Virus record (IMG/VR): IMGVR_UViG_3300027759_000045
Location: 62,001-126,000 of that record
Strand: one strand, 5' to 3'
DNA length: 64,000 nt
In this document: positions 42,425-50,589 of the stretch, piece after piece
Layout: every line of letters begins with the position of its first letter
Numbering within the stretch: position 1 is the stretch's first letter
Notes under the pieces: generated by a model
Seen by the model: only the letters and a program-made list of their open reading frames with translations
Told to the model about the DNA's origin: nothing
Databases searched by the model: none
Position numbers and translations under genes: made by a program

Positions 42425-42514
42425 GGTGTGGTCCTATAATGGTATTAGAGCAGATTGCTAATCTGTCGCTCGGCGTAATCCGAGTTCTGAGTTCGAGTCT
42501 CAGTCACACCGCCA
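42425..42514 (+). tRNA. tRNA-Ser(GCT)
   Basis: GCAGA-TTGCTAA-TCTGT, long variable arm, G73. Confidence 0.92.
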
Positions 42515-43382: not shown

Positions 43383-43456
43383 GCTCTTATAGTATAATGG
43401 CATTACATGCCCTTGGTAAGGGTAAAACACAAGTTCAATTCTTGTTAAGAGCACCA
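43383..43456 (+). tRNA. tRNA-Thr(GGT)
   Basis: TGCCC-TTGGTAA-GGGTA. Confidence 0.88.
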
Positions 43457-43460
43457 AATA

Positions 43461-43579
43461 ACCCTACAGTGAGCAGGGTATACTAAAGTACTAAGTTGAC
43501 CATTTAATGCCGTTTTGCTATAATAGAAACAAGTTAAGAAATTAGCTGGATCTGCAAATAACCCTACACAGTGTAGGGT
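43461..43579. repeat. two 19-bp palindromic sites 100 bp apart
   Basis: ACCCTACAGTGAGCAGGGT (43461-79) and perfect ACCCTACAC-A-GTGTAGGGT (43561-79), both preceded by AAATA. Confidence 0.75.
43496..43524 (+). promoter_or_regulatory. sigma70 promoter (first of tandem pair)
   Basis: TTGACC-N17-TATAAT. Confidence 0.85.
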
Positions 43580-43593
43580 GTTTGCAAAACAAA

Positions 43594-43622
43594 TTGACTA
43601 GATATAGCCATTGTGTTATACT
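43594..43622 (+). promoter_or_regulatory. sigma70 promoter (second of tandem pair)
   Basis: TTGACT-N17-TATACT. Confidence 0.8.
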
Positions 43623-43627
43623 AGAGA

Positions 43628-43661
43628 CTAGTTAGGAAATTAACTAGACGTTCTTTAAAAA
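43628..43661 (+). promoter_or_regulatory. boxB-like hairpin plus boxA-like antitermination signal
   Basis: CTAGTTA-GGAAAT-TAACTAG then CGTTCTTTAAAAA. Confidence 0.6.
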
Positions 43662-43691
43662 GTTATTGTTTTTGGTAACCCGCAAGGGTTG

Positions 43692-43906
43692 CTATTTTAA
43701 AATGTATTAAAGGTTACCTACACCGTTAGGGATCTAAGGCGAGGACAGTGGGGCCGCCCACGCTCAAGCTAGGTCTATGAAACCGGGCAGAAATGTCCAG
43801 AAAAGCGGCGGAGCATGTAGGCAGTAATGACCGTGCAGGCCTATAGCAGACGGTGCTATAGGTAGACATAGATGCACAATGGTTCCTTTAGTATGTTTTA
43901 AAATAG
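43692..43906 (+). ncRNA. unidentified ~215-nt multibranched RNA
   Basis: 22-bp closing stem with three G-U pairs and at least five internal helices. Confidence 0.65.
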
Positions 43907-43913
43907 TAGAATT

Positions 43914-43989
43914 TGGTCTGTTCGTATAGAGGTTATTACTGTGGATTGTCTATCCACTTACGGGGGTTCGATTCCCCCACAGACCGCCA
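43914..43989 (+). tRNA. tRNA-Asp(GTC)
   Basis: GTGGA-TTGTCTA-TCCAC; G73. Confidence 0.92.
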
Positions 43990-43995
43990 AGTTTT

Positions 43996-44060
43996 GAGAG
44001 TCACATCGCCTGGACACTTCCTTTGGTAACGAAGCACTAGGTCCTGCAACCGTGGCTCTC
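43996..44060 (+). ncRNA. 65-nt rod-like structured element
   Basis: GAGAGTCAC/GTGGCTCTC, CCTGG/CTAGG, CTTC/GAAG nested. Confidence 0.4.
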
Positions 44061-44068
44061 CCCTTTTT

Positions 44069-44143: not shown

Positions 44144-44144
44144 A

Positions 44145-44343
44145 ATCCCGTTACTATTTTCGTTAAAATAGCGTTTGATTAGCGATAGAGATCCGGTGGC
44201 AGAAGACCGTAAGTGTAGGGCTGGAAACTACCCCTCGGAATCTGATAGGCAGTATCCTTCTGCACACAGACATTAGAATAAAAAGGATGGACAGAGTAAC
44301 CGCTCAATTAAGGGCTGGCATGGAAACCAGTAGCTTATCCTAA
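44145..44343 (+). ncRNA. unidentified structured RNA domain A
   Basis: no ORF; CTATTTT/AAAATAG, GCAGAAG/CTTCTGC, CTGG/CCAG, GGAT/ATCC. Confidence 0.55.
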
Positions 44344-44346
44344 CAT

Positions 44347-44431: not shown

Positions 44432-44432
44432 G

Positions 44433-44630
44433 AACCCGCCGGGGTAACGCCTGGCTAGTATGACCCGTACGAGAGAAGTGAGTTCGTTACTCAAGGGTGG
44501 TAGTCTTCTTACCAAAAGGCCGCTGGCAATGCGATAACGGTTCCTGTCGGGAAGCGGGTGGAAGGTACGAGTGAGGGGTATGATAGCGTCATATCTTTCT
44601 GTACTATAATTACCGCCGGGGGATGCAGAG
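44433..44630 (+). ncRNA. unidentified pseudoknotted RNA domain B
   Basis: GC-rich non-coding stretch, at least five hairpins, and a long-range GGTGGTAGT(44496-504)/ATTACCGCC(44609-17) pairing. Confidence 0.6.
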
Positions 44631-44635
44631 CATTT

Positions 44636-45048: not shown

Positions 45049-45783
45049 ATGAAAATTAAACTACCTCAAGAATTGCACTGGTTCTGCCCAGTGGCAGCAC
45101 CTGACCTAATTAGATTAGGTGGAAAAATGGATGGTGGCTACATTGTGCCACGTTCAGCAGTGGAACAAGCACAGGGCCTGCTGAGTTTTGGACTGGGTGA
45201 CGATTTTACATTTGACCAAGACTGGCATGATCTCAAGCCCCAGGATCCAATTCAGATGTATGACGCCAGTGTTACCAGAGATACCATGCGTATCAGCATC
45301 AATACGCCGGTTCGCGGACATCTGGACATTCGAACCATGTACGATGAATTCTTTCAGGGCAATGTAAAACATTGGCCAGAGTTTATTGGTCCTGAGAACT
45401 TTGTTCGAGCCCTGGACAGAATGGGCGTGGATCAAGTGTTTATTAAAATGGATATCGAAGGTGGCGAATACAGTTTGATTGAAAGTATTTTACAACATCG
45501 AGATCGTATCGTGGGTGTCGCAATGGAATGGCATAACTGTGCAAATCGTAGCGAGCAATGGCGCCGAGCTGTGCAACGCTGGCAAGAGCACTATGCTATA
45601 GTACATGTACACGGAAATAACCATGTGGGATTTGATTCAGATGGTGTGTTTGGATGTATGGAACTGACACACATTCGCCGAGACTTGGTTCCTGGAAATG
45701 AACTGCGTAAAGAGTCTTACATACACGGTTTAGATTATTCTAACGTGGCTGGTCTTACTGATATTGAATACTATTTTGATTAA
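45049..45783 (+). CDS. FkbM-like methyltransferase
   Basis: LIRLGGKMDGGY, LSFGLGDD, FIKMDIEGGEY, HVHGNN. Confidence 0.75.
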   Translation: MKIKLPQELHWFCPVAAPDLIRLGGKMDGGYIVPRSAVEQAQGLLSFGLGDDFTFDQDWHDLKPQDPIQMYDASVTRDTMRISINTPVRGHLDIRTMYDEFFQGNVKHWPEFIGPENFVRALDRMGVDQVFIKMDIEGGEYSLIESILQHRDRIVGVAMEWHNCANRSEQWRRAVQRWQEHYAIVHVHGNNHVGFDSDGVFGCMELTHIRRDLVPGNELRKESYIHGLDYSNVAGLTDIEYYFD

Positions 45784-46057: not shown

Positions 46058-46867
46058 TCAAAGATTCTGTTGGGTTGATCCAATAATAATGCTGTTGGGT
46101 TGATCCAACAGCAGATCAACAACCAAATGCACACGTTGGGTTGTTCCTTGATTTTGAACTTGATGCCACGTTAAATTGTTAAGTCTGTACAGCCAACCTA
46201 AAGACATGTGTTCTTGACTGTCAGATTTTCCAGTAAAAGTTACTTGACGGTTGGTTTGCAGTGGTATGTGAAATCTACAATAGTGTTCAAAATAACGACC
46301 TCCGTCGATATGTAGCAGAACACTACCACCTGGCTGCATGCAGTTTAAAACACTGGTACCAATGGCCTTGGCATTCATTTTTTGTTGTGTCCAGTGTAAA
46401 AGTTTAGTCACACCGGGCAGTCGCACTTGCCATTCAGTGTCTACTGAGTCAAGATTTTTGTAATAATCCTTCAACTCAGTTATATTATCATTCGATGCGT
46501 GAGTGCGCAGAAAAATTGATTGGGTTTTATTTACAAAATTCTGTTGGACTGGTGAAGTAGTGTCAGTGACACTATCATGATGTTTAGCTAGGTAAGTTTG
46601 GATATATAAATCTGGTTGTGTCTGCGCCCAATCTATGTTGTCTATTTCGGCTATAGCCGCATTCAGTATAGATTCGGGTACCTGGCTGATTGCATGCGCT
46701 AACAACGGTGGGCGGGCAGCCTGCTTGAAACTGCCTGGTACATAACTATGCACGGTCTCGCATTCCTGACGTATGAAATCAGGTAGAAGTGGATAAGAAT
46801 CTTCGGTGGCACAGTCAGGCCATGCAGGATCTCTTACTGCTTGATAAAATTGATGCCAGTCATTCAT
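46058..46867 (-). CDS. Asp/Asn beta-hydroxylase-like 2OG-Fe(II) oxygenase
   Basis: PGGSVLLHIDGG...RFHIPL...WHQVQNQG...RVHLVVD; TAAATA upstream. Confidence 0.8.
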   Translation of the reverse strand: MNDWHQFYQAVRDPAWPDCATEDSYPLLPDFIRQECETVHSYVPGSFKQAARPPLLAHAISQVPESILNAAIAEIDNIDWAQTQPDLYIQTYLAKHHDSVTDTTSPVQQNFVNKTQSIFLRTHASNDNITELKDYYKNLDSVDTEWQVRLPGVTKLLHWTQQKMNAKAIGTSVLNCMQPGGSVLLHIDGGRYFEHYCRFHIPLQTNRQVTFTGKSDSQEHMSLGWLYRLNNLTWHQVQNQGTTQRVHLVVDLLLDQPNSIIIGSTQQNL

Positions 46868-46892
46868 GATCTGATATTTACCAATTAATGTT

Positions 46893-46968
46893 AGGGGACA
46901 TAAATTAACGGCCAACGCAACTGGCTTTTGCCCAGTAAATCAGAGTTCAATTTTTGTACCCTCTGCTA
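46893..46968 (+). pseudogene. degenerate tRNA, Gln-like body
   Basis: ACTGG-CTTTTGC-CCAGT arm; 3' GTACCCTCTGCTA nearly identical to the tRNA-Gln end; broken D and T arms, no CCA. Confidence 0.6.
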
Positions 46969-47718: not shown

Positions 47719-48219
47719 ATGGAAAAAATCAATCTCGCCAAGGTAAAAAAGTTCATTGAGGCGCAGACACCCGAAACTCGAATTTATCTCGGCTGTGACT
47801 CTGAGCGCCTTAGAGTAAACGGGGTCTGGCATGCCGACTATGTGTTGGCTGTTGTGGTTCACATCAACGGCAACAACGGTTGCAAACTATTTGGCGAAGT
47901 ACAGCGTGAGCGAGACTTTGATCAAAAAACTTCTCGTCCCAGTATGCGATTGATGAATGAAGTTTACAAAGTATCCGAACTGTACCTAAAGCTGGGCGAA
48001 GTGCTAGAAGGCCGTCATGTTGAAGTGCATTTGGATATTAACCCAGATGATCAGTACGGTTCTAGCTGTGTGATATCACAGGCAGTGGGCTATATCAAAG
48101 GCACTTGCAATGTGACACCATCAGTTAAACCCAATGCGTTTGCTGCCAGCTATGCTGCCGATCGTTTTAAAGGATTATCAACTGCATGTCATCGTGCCAG
48201 AATCAACGAAAGATTCTAA
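47719..48219 (+). CDS. RNase H-like YkuK/DUF458 family protein
   Basis: IYLGCDS...RLMNEVYK...EVHLDIN...VKPNAFAASYAAD. Confidence 0.8.
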   Translation: MEKINLAKVKKFIEAQTPETRIYLGCDSERLRVNGVWHADYVLAVVVHINGNNGCKLFGEVQRERDFDQKTSRPSMRLMNEVYKVSELYLKLGEVLEGRHVEVHLDINPDDQYGSSCVISQAVGYIKGTCNVTPSVKPNAFAASYAADRFKGLSTACHRARINERF

Positions 48220-48264: not shown

Positions 48265-48354
48265 GGAAGCGTGTCCGAGTGGCCGATGGAACTGGTCTAC
48301 TAAACCAGCATACGAGTAATCGTATCGTGAGTTCGAATCTCACCGCTTCCGCCA
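48265..48354 (+). tRNA. tRNA-Ser(ACT), rare A34 anticodon
   Basis: CTGGT-CTACTAA-ACCAG; Ser-type long variable arm and G73. Confidence 0.85.
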
Positions 48355-48453: not shown

Positions 48454-48840
48454 ATGAACTCTAATCCTGAGCGCAAGAACAATTTAGAATACGACTTGCG
48501 GAATACCAAGTGGATCTGCGACAAGGCCAAGGCCAGCGAATTTTACGCACAAAATCTGTATGCTGCCATGTGCAATCAAGACTGGCAAAAAAATGAAGTT
48601 TGGCCGTTGCTCAAAAGCGAAACATACAGTTGCAGTTGGCGCTATGCCGGTGGCATTGTGGCCGACATGGTCGAAAAGGGTGACTATATCGATTGGTACT
48701 GCTCAGGTATTCGTGGAGAACAAGGCATCGATTACGAGCCTCCTCTAACTTTTGTGCCCGAAGGTACAGTCACAGAAGAAATACGCGAAGACTTTTTTAA
48801 ATTAGGATGGATTCCTATTGATCAAGTAGACGATGAATAA
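48454..48840 (+). CDS. hypothetical protein, 128 aa
   Basis: ORF with AGGA RBS. Confidence 0.8.
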   Translation: MNSNPERKNNLEYDLRNTKWICDKAKASEFYAQNLYAAMCNQDWQKNEVWPLLKSETYSCSWRYAGGIVADMVEKGDYIDWYCSGIRGEQGIDYEPPLTFVPEGTVTEEIREDFFKLGWIPIDQVDDE

Positions 48841-48849
48841 ATAAGTGTT

Positions 48850-49270
48850 ATTGCTGTATGAAGCAAAGAGAAAAGTGTTCTGGACGGGGGTGCGAATCCC
48901 CCCAGGTCCACCAAAAAGACTTTTACCCTAGACCGCAAGAGCCAACTACATGTTGCGGAAAAGGATGTGAAGGATGTGTCTGGATTAGCTATTTTGAAGC
49001 ACTAGCTAGATGGGAGAGTCTTTTTGGAGGGCCTGACCTAGATTCGACAGGGCAACAAGTAAATTAGTGGACAGCTCGGGAATGTGAAACCCGTAGGGTT
49101 GGGGAGACTCGGCCGAAGAAGCAAAAAACGTAAATGCAAACGTAAACAAAACCGTAACTGTTTCAGGCAAGAATATCAAGTTCTCTGCTCGTTCAGCCAA
49201 GGAAGCATTGGCAGTCTAAACACTGCCTAGGGTTTTTGGTAATTTATCCTCGTAACAGAATTAAATTACC
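48850..49270 (+). ncRNA. ssrA: circularly permuted two-piece tmRNA
   Basis: acceptor piece first (T arm GGGGG-TGCGAAT-CCCCC, CAGGTCC-A-CCA ending 48913); coding piece from GGGCCTGAC..ATTCGAC at 49029 with G3-U70; tag ANVNKTVTVSGKNIKFSARSAKEALAV at 49136-49219; 5' end approximate. Confidence 0.9.
48858..49067 (+). CDS. Oxidored-like (CC..GC..CVW..Y) small protein nested in the tmRNA gene
   Basis: PRPQEPTTCCGKGCEGCVWISYFEALARWE encoded in the tmRNA spacer. Confidence 0.5.
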   Translation: MKQREKCSGRGCESPQVHQKDFYPRPQEPTTCCGKGCEGCVWISYFEALARWESLFGGPDLDSTGQQVN

Positions 49271-49275
49271 TTTTT
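49238..49275 (+). terminator. hairpin plus U-tract at the tmRNA 3' end
   Basis: GGTAATTTA/TAAATTACC then TTTTT. Confidence 0.6.
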
Positions 49276-49299
49276 ATTCAATAACAAAAATCCACCGGC

Positions 49300-50589
49300 A
49301 TGAACATTCCCTTAGACAATTTGTACCACTGGGTGCAATCGATCATACCTGTTCCTGCAGTAATCTATAGATTTTATCCACACGGTAGTAAAAATATTGT
49401 TGATCTTACTTCACTGAGTCCCCGACCCGATGAGGAACATTATGTTGATATTCCAGTTGTTGTCCACGACCAGGAACCATTGGATTATAATCTGTACACA
49501 AATATTGATCTGGCATCATTGCAGCAATTGTGGCAAACCATGGCGTTAAGCAATCCTGTTGCCACAGAAATAAGATGCCAGGCCTTAGTTGATAAAAATT
49601 TATTGGCAATACCATTAGCAGGTGGATCGCTTCATGACCAGGCAATTTTACTGCATTCTGAAAAAAATTCTGTTGACTTAGAACAGTATTCTCAAAATAA
49701 TTTTTTGCCGGTTTACCATTGGTGTCATGCAATTATTGCTCGTGACTGGTATAGATTTGCTGAAATAGATGCTCGGCTTGTTCCACAATCTCATATACAA
49801 GAAAAATTCCTTATATATAATCGCGCATGGGGCAATACCAGAGAATACAGATTAAAGTTCATGGAGTTATTGATTAAACATGGATTACATGAATCAAGTA
49901 AAACCAGTATATCAGCCAGAGCCGAAGGCAATCAAGGACATCATTATCATGATCATAAATTTAAAAATGTCAATTTTGCGCTTGAAGACAGCACTGTATT
50001 AGATCTGCTCGAAGATAATCAATTCAACAGCAACGAAAGCGCACAGTACAATCATGATGATTTCAATTCAACTGCAATAAGTGTAGTTTTAGAAACCATG
50101 TTTGACGACTCAAGAATTCACTTGACAGAAAAGACACTGAGACCAATTGCCTGCGGTCATCCATTTGTATTGGCAGCGGGGCCACGCAGTTTAGAGTATC
50201 TTAGAAGTTACGGATTTCGAACATTTGCTCCATGGATTGACGAAAGTTATGATCATGAACCTGACAGTTTGCGCAGACTTGAAAAAATTATCAACAGCAT
50301 GAATAAAATTAATTTGCTTGATGCCGAGGAGTTTGATCAATTTCTAATAGAAATCAAACACATAGCCGATTTTAACAAAAAACATTTTTTCAGCGATGCA
50401 TTTCAACAACAGGTGATTGAAGAATTAAAAACTAATTTAACACATGCAATTCAACACATTAAAAAACCACGTGGCATATTTCCAAGAGCATTGAAAAAAA
50501 AAATATTAAAAGCAGATCCCAGTTTCTTTGATACAAAATGTCATTATGACTATTATTGCGAAGTGATTCGGTTGCTGAGATCTCAATGA
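49300..50589 (+). CDS. GT10-like protein (paralogue)
   Basis: VVLETMF....IHLTEKTLRPIACGHPFVLAAG...GFRTF...IDESYD. Confidence 0.5.
   Translation: MNIPLDNLYHWVQSIIPVPAVIYRFYPHGSKNIVDLTSLSPRPDEEHYVDIPVVVHDQEPLDYNLYTNIDLASLQQLWQTMALSNPVATEIRCQALVDKNLLAIPLAGGSLHDQAILLHSEKNSVDLEQYSQNNFLPVYHWCHAIIARDWYRFAEIDARLVPQSHIQEKFLIYNRAWGNTREYRLKFMELLIKHGLHESSKTSISARAEGNQGHHYHDHKFKNVNFALEDSTVLDLLEDNQFNSNESAQYNHDDFNSTAISVVLETMFDDSRIHLTEKTLRPIACGHPFVLAAGPRSLEYLRSYGFRTFAPWIDESYDHEPDSLRRLEKIINSMNKINLLDAEEFDQFLIEIKHIADFNKKHFFSDAFQQQVIEELKTNLTHAIQHIKKPRGIFPRALKKKILKADPSFFDTKCHYDYYCEVIRLLRSQ

Follow-up and report, generated by a model that had tools for sequence, protein, structure and literature searches.

A new structured RNA encoded by giant phages

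The window analyzed in this work is a stretch of 64,000 nucleotides comprising bases 62001-126000 of a complete 346,856-bp IMG/VR virus record with direct terminal repeats (IMGVR_UViG_3300027759_000045). The family-B DNA polymerase of this virus (PHROG DNA polymerase) is closest to those of the giant phages Sinorhizobium phage Phosso (51% identity), Agrobacterium phage Atu_ph07 (47%) and the 121Q group. The window carries a same-strand array of 26 tRNAs plus a permuted tmRNA at 48821-49310 (+), which was assigned to the Rfam model tmRNA_permuted with 104.7 bits and for which ARAGORN predicts the tag peptide ANVNKTVTVSGKNIKFSARSAKEALAV. Permuted tmRNAs are typical of Alpha- and Betaproteobacteria and cyanobacteria, and together with the alphaproteobacterial-phage relatives this hints at an alphaproteobacterial host. 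ARAGORN also calls a tRNA-Ser with the unusual anticodon ACT (A34) at 48265-48354 (+), in addition to tRNA-Ser(GCT) at 42425-42514. Protein genes are embedded in the array as well, including an RNase H-like DUF458 protein (47719-48219, +; PF04308, E = 1.4e-16), which could take part in RNA processing, a weak FkbM-methyltransferase-like ORF (45049-45783, +) and an Asp/Asn beta-hydroxylase-like ORF on the opposite strand (46058-46915, -). The element described here occupies positions 43692-43906 (+), between tRNA-Thr(GGU) (43383-43456) and tRNA-Asp(GUC) (43915-43989), the latter starting 8 nt after its terminal stem.

Upstream of the element there are two tandem cassettes of ~100 bp (43456-43655, +), each of them composed of a hairpin starting with AAATAACCCTACA, a near-consensus sigma-70 promoter and a transcribed AGTTAGRAAAT-type leader. 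In the first cassette (43456-43524) the hairpin AAATAACCCTACAG..GGGT is followed by TTGACC-17-TATAAT at 43496-43524 (11 of 12 matches), and in the second one (43556-43622) the same hairpin type precedes TTGACT-17-TATACT at 43594-43622, which is probably the proximal start of the precursor. Both promoters have an extended TG, and an exact 13-mer is repeated at 43456 and 43556. The 5' leader of the precursor (43628-43691) contains the hairpin CTAGTTA..TAACTAG (43628-43647) and a GCAA-capped hairpin (43676-43691) that abuts the terminal stem. A small hairpin is found just 5' of this stem in most homologues that lie within tRNA arrays, and in some homologues the AGTTAGRAAAT-type leader words form the 5' strand of the stem itself.

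The original prediction proposed an unidentified multibranched RNA enclosed in a 22-bp processing stem, transcribed as the first product of tandem promoters and not matched to 5S, 6S, SRP, RNase P or common riboswitches, and each of these points was supported. The terminal stem, P1, is formed by pairing of 43692-43713 with 43885-43906 over 22 bp and includes three wobble pairs (43703·43895, 43704·43894 and 43707·43891). The + strand folds to -76.9 kcal/mol (z = -4.66), a value not reached by any of 200 shuffles, while the - strand reaches -62.5 kcal/mol (z = -3.38). Four of the six inner helices originally proposed were confirmed by covariation, namely CCTACA/TGTAGG (P2, 43717-22 / 43816-21), GTGGG-GCCG-CCCAC (P3b, 43748-61), GTGCA/TGCAC (P5b, 43833-37 / 43873-77) and the 9-10-bp CCTATAGCA/TGCTATAGG hairpin (P6, 43839-63). 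The remaining two required correction: CCGTT (43723-27) pairs with GGCGG (43807-11) and not with AGCGG three bases upstream, since that register is the one that covaries (CCGUU/GACGG, UCGCU/GGCGA, CCACU/GGUGG), and TGTCC (43794-98) pairs locally with GGGCA (43785-89) in a small hairpin, P4, and not with GGACA (43744-48), as P4 changes on both sides in relatives while GGACA stays fixed.

Homologues were searched in viral and cellular sequence collections. An exact 19-mer from the core found 17 IMG/VR loci, and in total more than 100 homologues exist in uncultured aquatic phage contigs, many of which are 150-525 kb long; the runs that hold the sequence are lake, river, marine and wastewater samples. 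The genome containing the window holds one copy. In contrast, blastn of four family members against 50,697 GenBank phage records gave no match, and the covariance model, applied with strict filters, found nothing in five cultured relatives chosen by DNA polymerase similarity (Phosso, Atu_ph07, Vibrio 2.275.O, 121Q and XbC2). A pattern scan of 185,579 cellular genomes (GTDB) gave 22 loci, none of which was confirmed by the model, so they are chance matches.

To evaluate the fold, a hand-checked structure of the window copy was mapped onto a nine-sequence alignment, from which a covariance model (R1) was built; 33 matches were aligned and the model was rebuilt as R2, which was then used to align 71 distinct sequences. 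Model-guided alignments were used because a MAFFT/RNAalifold consensus on diverse members misaligned the variable arms. In the alignment of 71 sequences, 91.0% of cells form standard pairs, against 35-47% when the 3' partners are slid by 1-3 columns, 49 of 61 pairs show changes on both sides, and the covariation score is 0.543, against at most 0.084 for the slid versions; no column shuffle out of 500 reaches any observed measure. The alignment was fitted to the model, which flatters these figures, however, the margin is still very large and every helix except the invariant core pairs carries compensatory changes. The 33-sequence alignment agrees with these results. Besides, G·U/U·G make up 13.2% of cells and A·C/C·A 1.7%, a ratio of about 8:1, therefore selection acts on the + strand as RNA and not on duplex DNA.

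P1 is AU-rich, 19-26 bp long across the family (median 22), with a conserved U·G (43707·43891 in the window) three pairs outward of the AAAGG/CCUUU end, and opens into a three-way junction (P1/P2/P5). The 5' part of the invariant core (43714-43729) comprises J1/2 UUA, the P2 5' strand CCUACA, the P2a 5' strand CCGUU and then AG; the consensus GGUUACCUA..CCGyUAGG is at least 90-97% conserved in the 71 sequences, and both P2 and P2a covary. The first arm continues from P2 and P2a into a second junction carrying P3 and P4. The P3 arm (43730-43776) includes P3, P3a and P3b, the last one with a GNCG tetraloop (GCCG, 43753-56), and all P3 and P3b pairs show compensatory changes. It is followed (43777-43806) by J3/4 (AUGAAA, part of the conserved cAuGAA), the P4 hairpin GGGCA-GAAA-UGUCC (43785-98) and J4/2a. 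The segment 43807-43832 includes the P2a 3' strand GGCGG, AGCA, the P2 3' strand UGUAGG, the invariant J2/5 CAGUAAU and the start of P5 (GACC); UAGG..GUAAUGA is invariant, and the P5 base pair covaries (CG 46, GC 14, UA 5, UG 5). The second arm (43833-43884) contains P5b (GUGCA/UGCAC), the P6 hairpin with loop GACGG (43849-53) and the P5 3' strand GGUU, and the P1 3' strand (43885-43906) closes the structure. The bases conserved at 90% or more (GGUUACCUA, CCGyUAGG, cAuGAA, GnCGG, UAGG..GUAAUGA and gUUCC) are located in the junction strands and the helices next to them.

Interestingly, the periphery comes in two classes. In class A, which includes the window, P3b has a GNCG tetraloop, P6 a GACG(G/U) loop and P4 is short, variable and often GNRA-capped; the two loops co-occur in 39 of 44 cleanly extracted sequences. 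In class B, P4 is replaced by a long arm presenting CACCA, together with a P6 loop carrying UGGUG (14 of 14 sequences). Two class A variants, L164 and L207, have GGCA on P3b together with GAUGC on P6, which, if the loops pair through C-G/G-C, represents a compensatory G:C to A:U change. It is concluded that the two arms are clamped by a distal loop-loop contact, the partner of which has moved from P3b to P4 between the classes, although sequence alone does not distinguish a contact within one molecule from one between molecules. The class A contact, in which two GNCG-type loops would pair through only two C-G pairs, is supported only by class-level co-occurrence and one compensatory variant.

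Regarding the transcriptional context, 58 of 71 homologues have a promoter matching at least 10 of 12 consensus positions within 150 nt upstream on the same strand, while 3 of 71 do on the antisense strand of the same stretches. In 21 homologues the -10 box ends 0-9 nt before P1, so the RNA begins at the transcription start, and in about 35 the promoter lies 66-115 nt upstream with a small hairpin in between, as in the window. Most copies sit in tRNA arrays on the tRNA strand, with a tRNA (Asp, Ser, Tyr, Glu, Leu or Ile) starting within a few bases of P1, while about a third have no tRNA nearby and are followed by small ORFs, in several cases after a second consensus promoter placed directly behind P1. 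The unit therefore behaves as a self-contained promoter-plus-RNA cassette. No conserved neighbouring protein with a telling domain was found, the neighbours being small ORFs shared among related phages plus a radical SAM protein in one locus.

Evidence at the RNA level was obtained from assembled contigs of public metatranscriptomes aligned at 90% identity or more, which come from relatives as well as from this phage and carry neither strand nor true read ends. In one run (X28) the RNA has depth 47.6, the 5' flank 0 and tRNA-Asp 13.6, and in two others (X26 and X27) the contigs lie wholly within 43721-43877, a pattern that DNA contamination would not give. The depth is modest compared with two neighbouring spacers. 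A contig from run X16 spans 43636-43827 and represents a precursor starting just after the second promoter, and a contig of a relative in run X19 spans 43514-43986. Three runs from different studies contain contigs that run from the 3' strand of P1 back into the 5' strand: in X28, 43733-43891 is followed by 43698-43762 in a 224-nt contig whose first and last 30 nt are the same, as expected for a closed 194-nt cycle at k = 31; in X17 the join is 43900->43699; and in X25 position 43888 is followed by 17 variant bases and then 43710. The joined form was not found in 2.9 million viral contigs (IMG/VR), and in 241 million metagenome records (JGI) only three chance hits were obtained, corresponding to AT-rich coding sequence with no model match. 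Either the RNA is circular, or its ends are so sharply defined and so close together that a few template-switch cDNAs closed the assembly graph. The second reading is plausible since a closed de Bruijn cycle needs only a few junction reads, and reverse-transcriptase template switching between ends held together by P1 could supply them, helped by 2-3 nt of shared bases at the joints and a TTTTAAAAT repeat on both P1 strands; true circularity is considered about as likely as not, or slightly less so. Both readings place the mature ends inside P1, near 43698-43702 and 43891-43903, leaving a 9-15-bp stub. An endless ORF across the joint, of the DRT2 type, is not supported, as the circle lengths (194, 196 and 202 nt) are not multiples of three and stop codons abound.

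The RNA could not be assigned to a known family. No Rfam 15 model reached its gathering threshold on 43692-43906, nor E <= 10 apart from microRNA-type noise, and no hit was obtained at E <= 1 on two divergent relatives (a class B member and an L146-type member). With regard to bacterial Y RNA/YrlA, no TROVE (Ro) domain was detected in the complete phage genome, whereas positive controls were, and no T-arm-like module is present. The absence of an RVT_1 domain in the phage genome, together with downstream neighbours that are tRNAs, is contrary to a retron msr-msd or DRT template RNA. The string GAGGACAGUGG resembles CR-I of RNase P RNA only superficially: it forms the local helices P3a and P3b, which covary, it is not conserved across the family, and no RNase P model matches. 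A group I intron is not supported either, as the secondary structure is nested with no pseudoknot in the core and the flanks are promoters and a complete tRNA. Resemblances of AGGCAGUAAUGAC to 4.5S RNA or the 16S 530 loop, of AAGGUUACC..CCGUUAGG to the 16S 3' end, and to the hammerhead core (in which junction strand order and sequence do not fit) have no model support. Searches of the phage genome for RtcB, RNase III and Rnl1 found none, although for Rnl1 the control genomes were also silent, and the single RNA_ligase hit (PF09414) is an ATP-dependent DNA ligase. The family, its fold and its possible circular form were likewise not found in the literature searched, although prior listing among the 8,495 unnamed candidates of an IMG/VR structured-RNA survey (PMC10690425) cannot be excluded.

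Ornate phage RNAs of unknown function in tRNA islands are already known. The phage T4 species 1 and 2 RNAs (rnaC, rnaD) are also small stable RNAs of unknown function, encoded inside the tRNA gene cluster of a phage with a T4-type replication core, co-transcribed with the tRNAs and cut out of the precursor. However, they are 119-139 nt long and lie at the 3' end of the cluster, and rnaC ends in a tRNA-like T-arm, while the RNA described here is about 200 nt and lies at the head of a transcription unit; no sequence or structure similarity was detected, the best score of R1 with filters off in the T4 tRNA region being 6.8 bits and not on rnaC or rnaD. ROOL and GOLLD are ornate, covariation-supported RNAs of phages and prophages, often beside tRNA islands, which are 3-4 times larger and for which neither Rfam model matches here; their kissing loops, first read as tertiary contacts, proved to be intermolecular in cryo-EM structures (bioRxiv 10.1101/2024.12.08.627333). 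As in rRNA-type processing stems cut by RNase III, the mature RNA is enclosed by a roughly two-turn duplex formed by its flanks, with mature ends mapping inside the stem. In archaea such stems are cut and the ends ligated into circles in pre-rRNA intermediates, but the element has no bulge-helix-bulge motif, and circularization in a bacterial virus would, to our knowledge, be without precedent.

The best-supported interpretation, held at about even confidence, is that the locus is the gene of a stable, highly structured non-coding RNA of a new family that acts in trans on an unknown partner. It is transcribed first from strong sigma-70-type phage promoters as the head of a polycistronic tRNA precursor, as indicated by the promoter linkage and the precursor contig. 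RNase P cleavage at the 5' end of the adjoining tRNA is inferred to free its 3' side, and a double-strand-specific cut (RNase III type) or trimming inside P1 would remove the flanks. The nucleases are inferred; the phage itself appears to encode no RNase III, and the joint positions, judged from assembled contigs, differ between runs and do not give the 2-nt 3' overhang expected of this enzyme. The product would be a compact particle of about 195-200 nt, the stability of which is inferred from contig depth, with its two arms held side by side by the loop-loop contact, in this class between the P3b GNCG loop and the P6 GACG loop, and with ends held together by the P1 stub that may be ligated into a circle. 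The invariant junction core (GGUUACCUA, CCGYUAGG, CAUGAA, GUAAUGA, GUUCC) is proposed as the functional site, most likely binding a host or phage factor as an RNP scaffold or decoy during takeover. Since in several homologues another promoter follows directly after the RNA, the downstream genes do not need it in cis. A more far-reaching possibility, which remains doubtful, is that the RNA is excised within P1 and covalently circularized in infected cells as a DNA-encoded, non-intronic circular RNA of a bacterial virus, an exonuclease-proof particle that would use its junction pocket to soak up a host factor or small-molecule signal early in infection, or, alternatively, that its GNCG loops assemble it into RNA-only multimers, as in ROOL and GOLLD. 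If the re-joined transcripts are true circles, they would point to an RNA circularization route in bacteria and phages that has not been described.

Among the alternatives, a cis-acting 5' leader is possible but less likely. In this view the folded RNA would act on its own transcript, for example by making RNA polymerase terminator-resistant through the long tRNA array, as HK022 put or EAR RNAs do, or by protecting the 5' end from decay, and the mature species would be only a stable by-product. The position of the RNA at or near the transcription start in most homologues, the lack of a terminator between it and the downstream tRNAs and the precursor contig running from the promoter into the RNA are in agreement with this model. 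However, the full consensus promoter placed after the RNA in several homologues gives the downstream genes their own start, the RNA accumulates without its flanks, polymerase-modifying RNAs seem to be much smaller, and a ~22-bp closing stem plus a clamped three-way junction is more than 5' protection needs.

A ligand-binding aptamer, acting as a switch or, if abundant and stable, as a sponge (for instance for a nucleotide second messenger), is somewhat less probable still. Invariant bases concentrated in junction strands, variable helices and peripheral loops, and a tertiary clamp swapped between classes are a pattern typical of aptamers and ribozymes, and purine and lysine riboswitches share a closing P1, two arms packed side by side by a loop-loop contact and conserved junction strands. 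On the other hand, P1 is much longer and too stable to switch, the arms are larger and branched, there is no expression platform, the element is followed by a tRNA or a new promoter instead of a terminator or a sequestered ribosome-binding site, no Rfam riboswitch matches and no ligand is suggested by the neighbouring genes. A ribozyme catalyzing its own excision and/or end-joining would explain the re-joined contigs in three metatranscriptomes without a phage-encoded ligase, and the complex conserved tertiary architecture is compatible with it, but this is improbable given that no Rfam ribozyme or intron model matches, that P1 is a plain helix without the internal loops or pseudoknotted core of known self-cleaving or self-splicing classes, and that the joint positions differ between variants. 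Finally, a DNA-level element (an inverted repeat for recombination, replication or packaging) or a chance palindrome, suggested by the 22-bp AT-rich inverted repeat flanking about 170 bp and by the - strand fold, is contradicted by the excess of G·U over A·C, the covariation of the inner helices and the transcription and processing of the region.

Neighbouring spacers of the array are mosaics and some may encode additional RNAs. The spacer 44144-44346 (+), between tRNA-Glu and tRNA-Tyr, is conserved at 83-97% identity in 10 related loci, with compensatory changes in two helices, and is 97.5% identical in the homologous locus L026, whose copy of the target RNA is a distant variant. In two lake metatranscriptomes contigs aligned to it reach depths of up to 33,430, against about 100-350 for the flanking tRNAs, although some of the depth may come from other organisms. 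It has no Rfam hit, contains CUGAUAGGCAGUAUCC, which recalls UAGGCAGUAAUGAC of the target, and is probably a second unknown stable RNA. The spacer 44432-44635 (+), between tRNA-Tyr and tRNA-Ala, is present in more than 30 loci, shows very high metatranscriptome depth (up to 18,830 at 44474-44607) and gives only a weak sub-threshold tmRNA_permuted hit (24 bits). Its last ~45 nt (44590-44635) carry a hairpin-plus-promoter cassette that lies directly upstream of the target-RNA homologues in loci L007, L010 and L017, therefore promoter cassettes shuffle within these arrays. A 79-nt spacer between tRNA-Asp and tRNA-Glu (43990-44068, +) is conserved at 86-96% identity in 16 related loci and can form a GAGAGUCAC/GUGGCUCUC stem.
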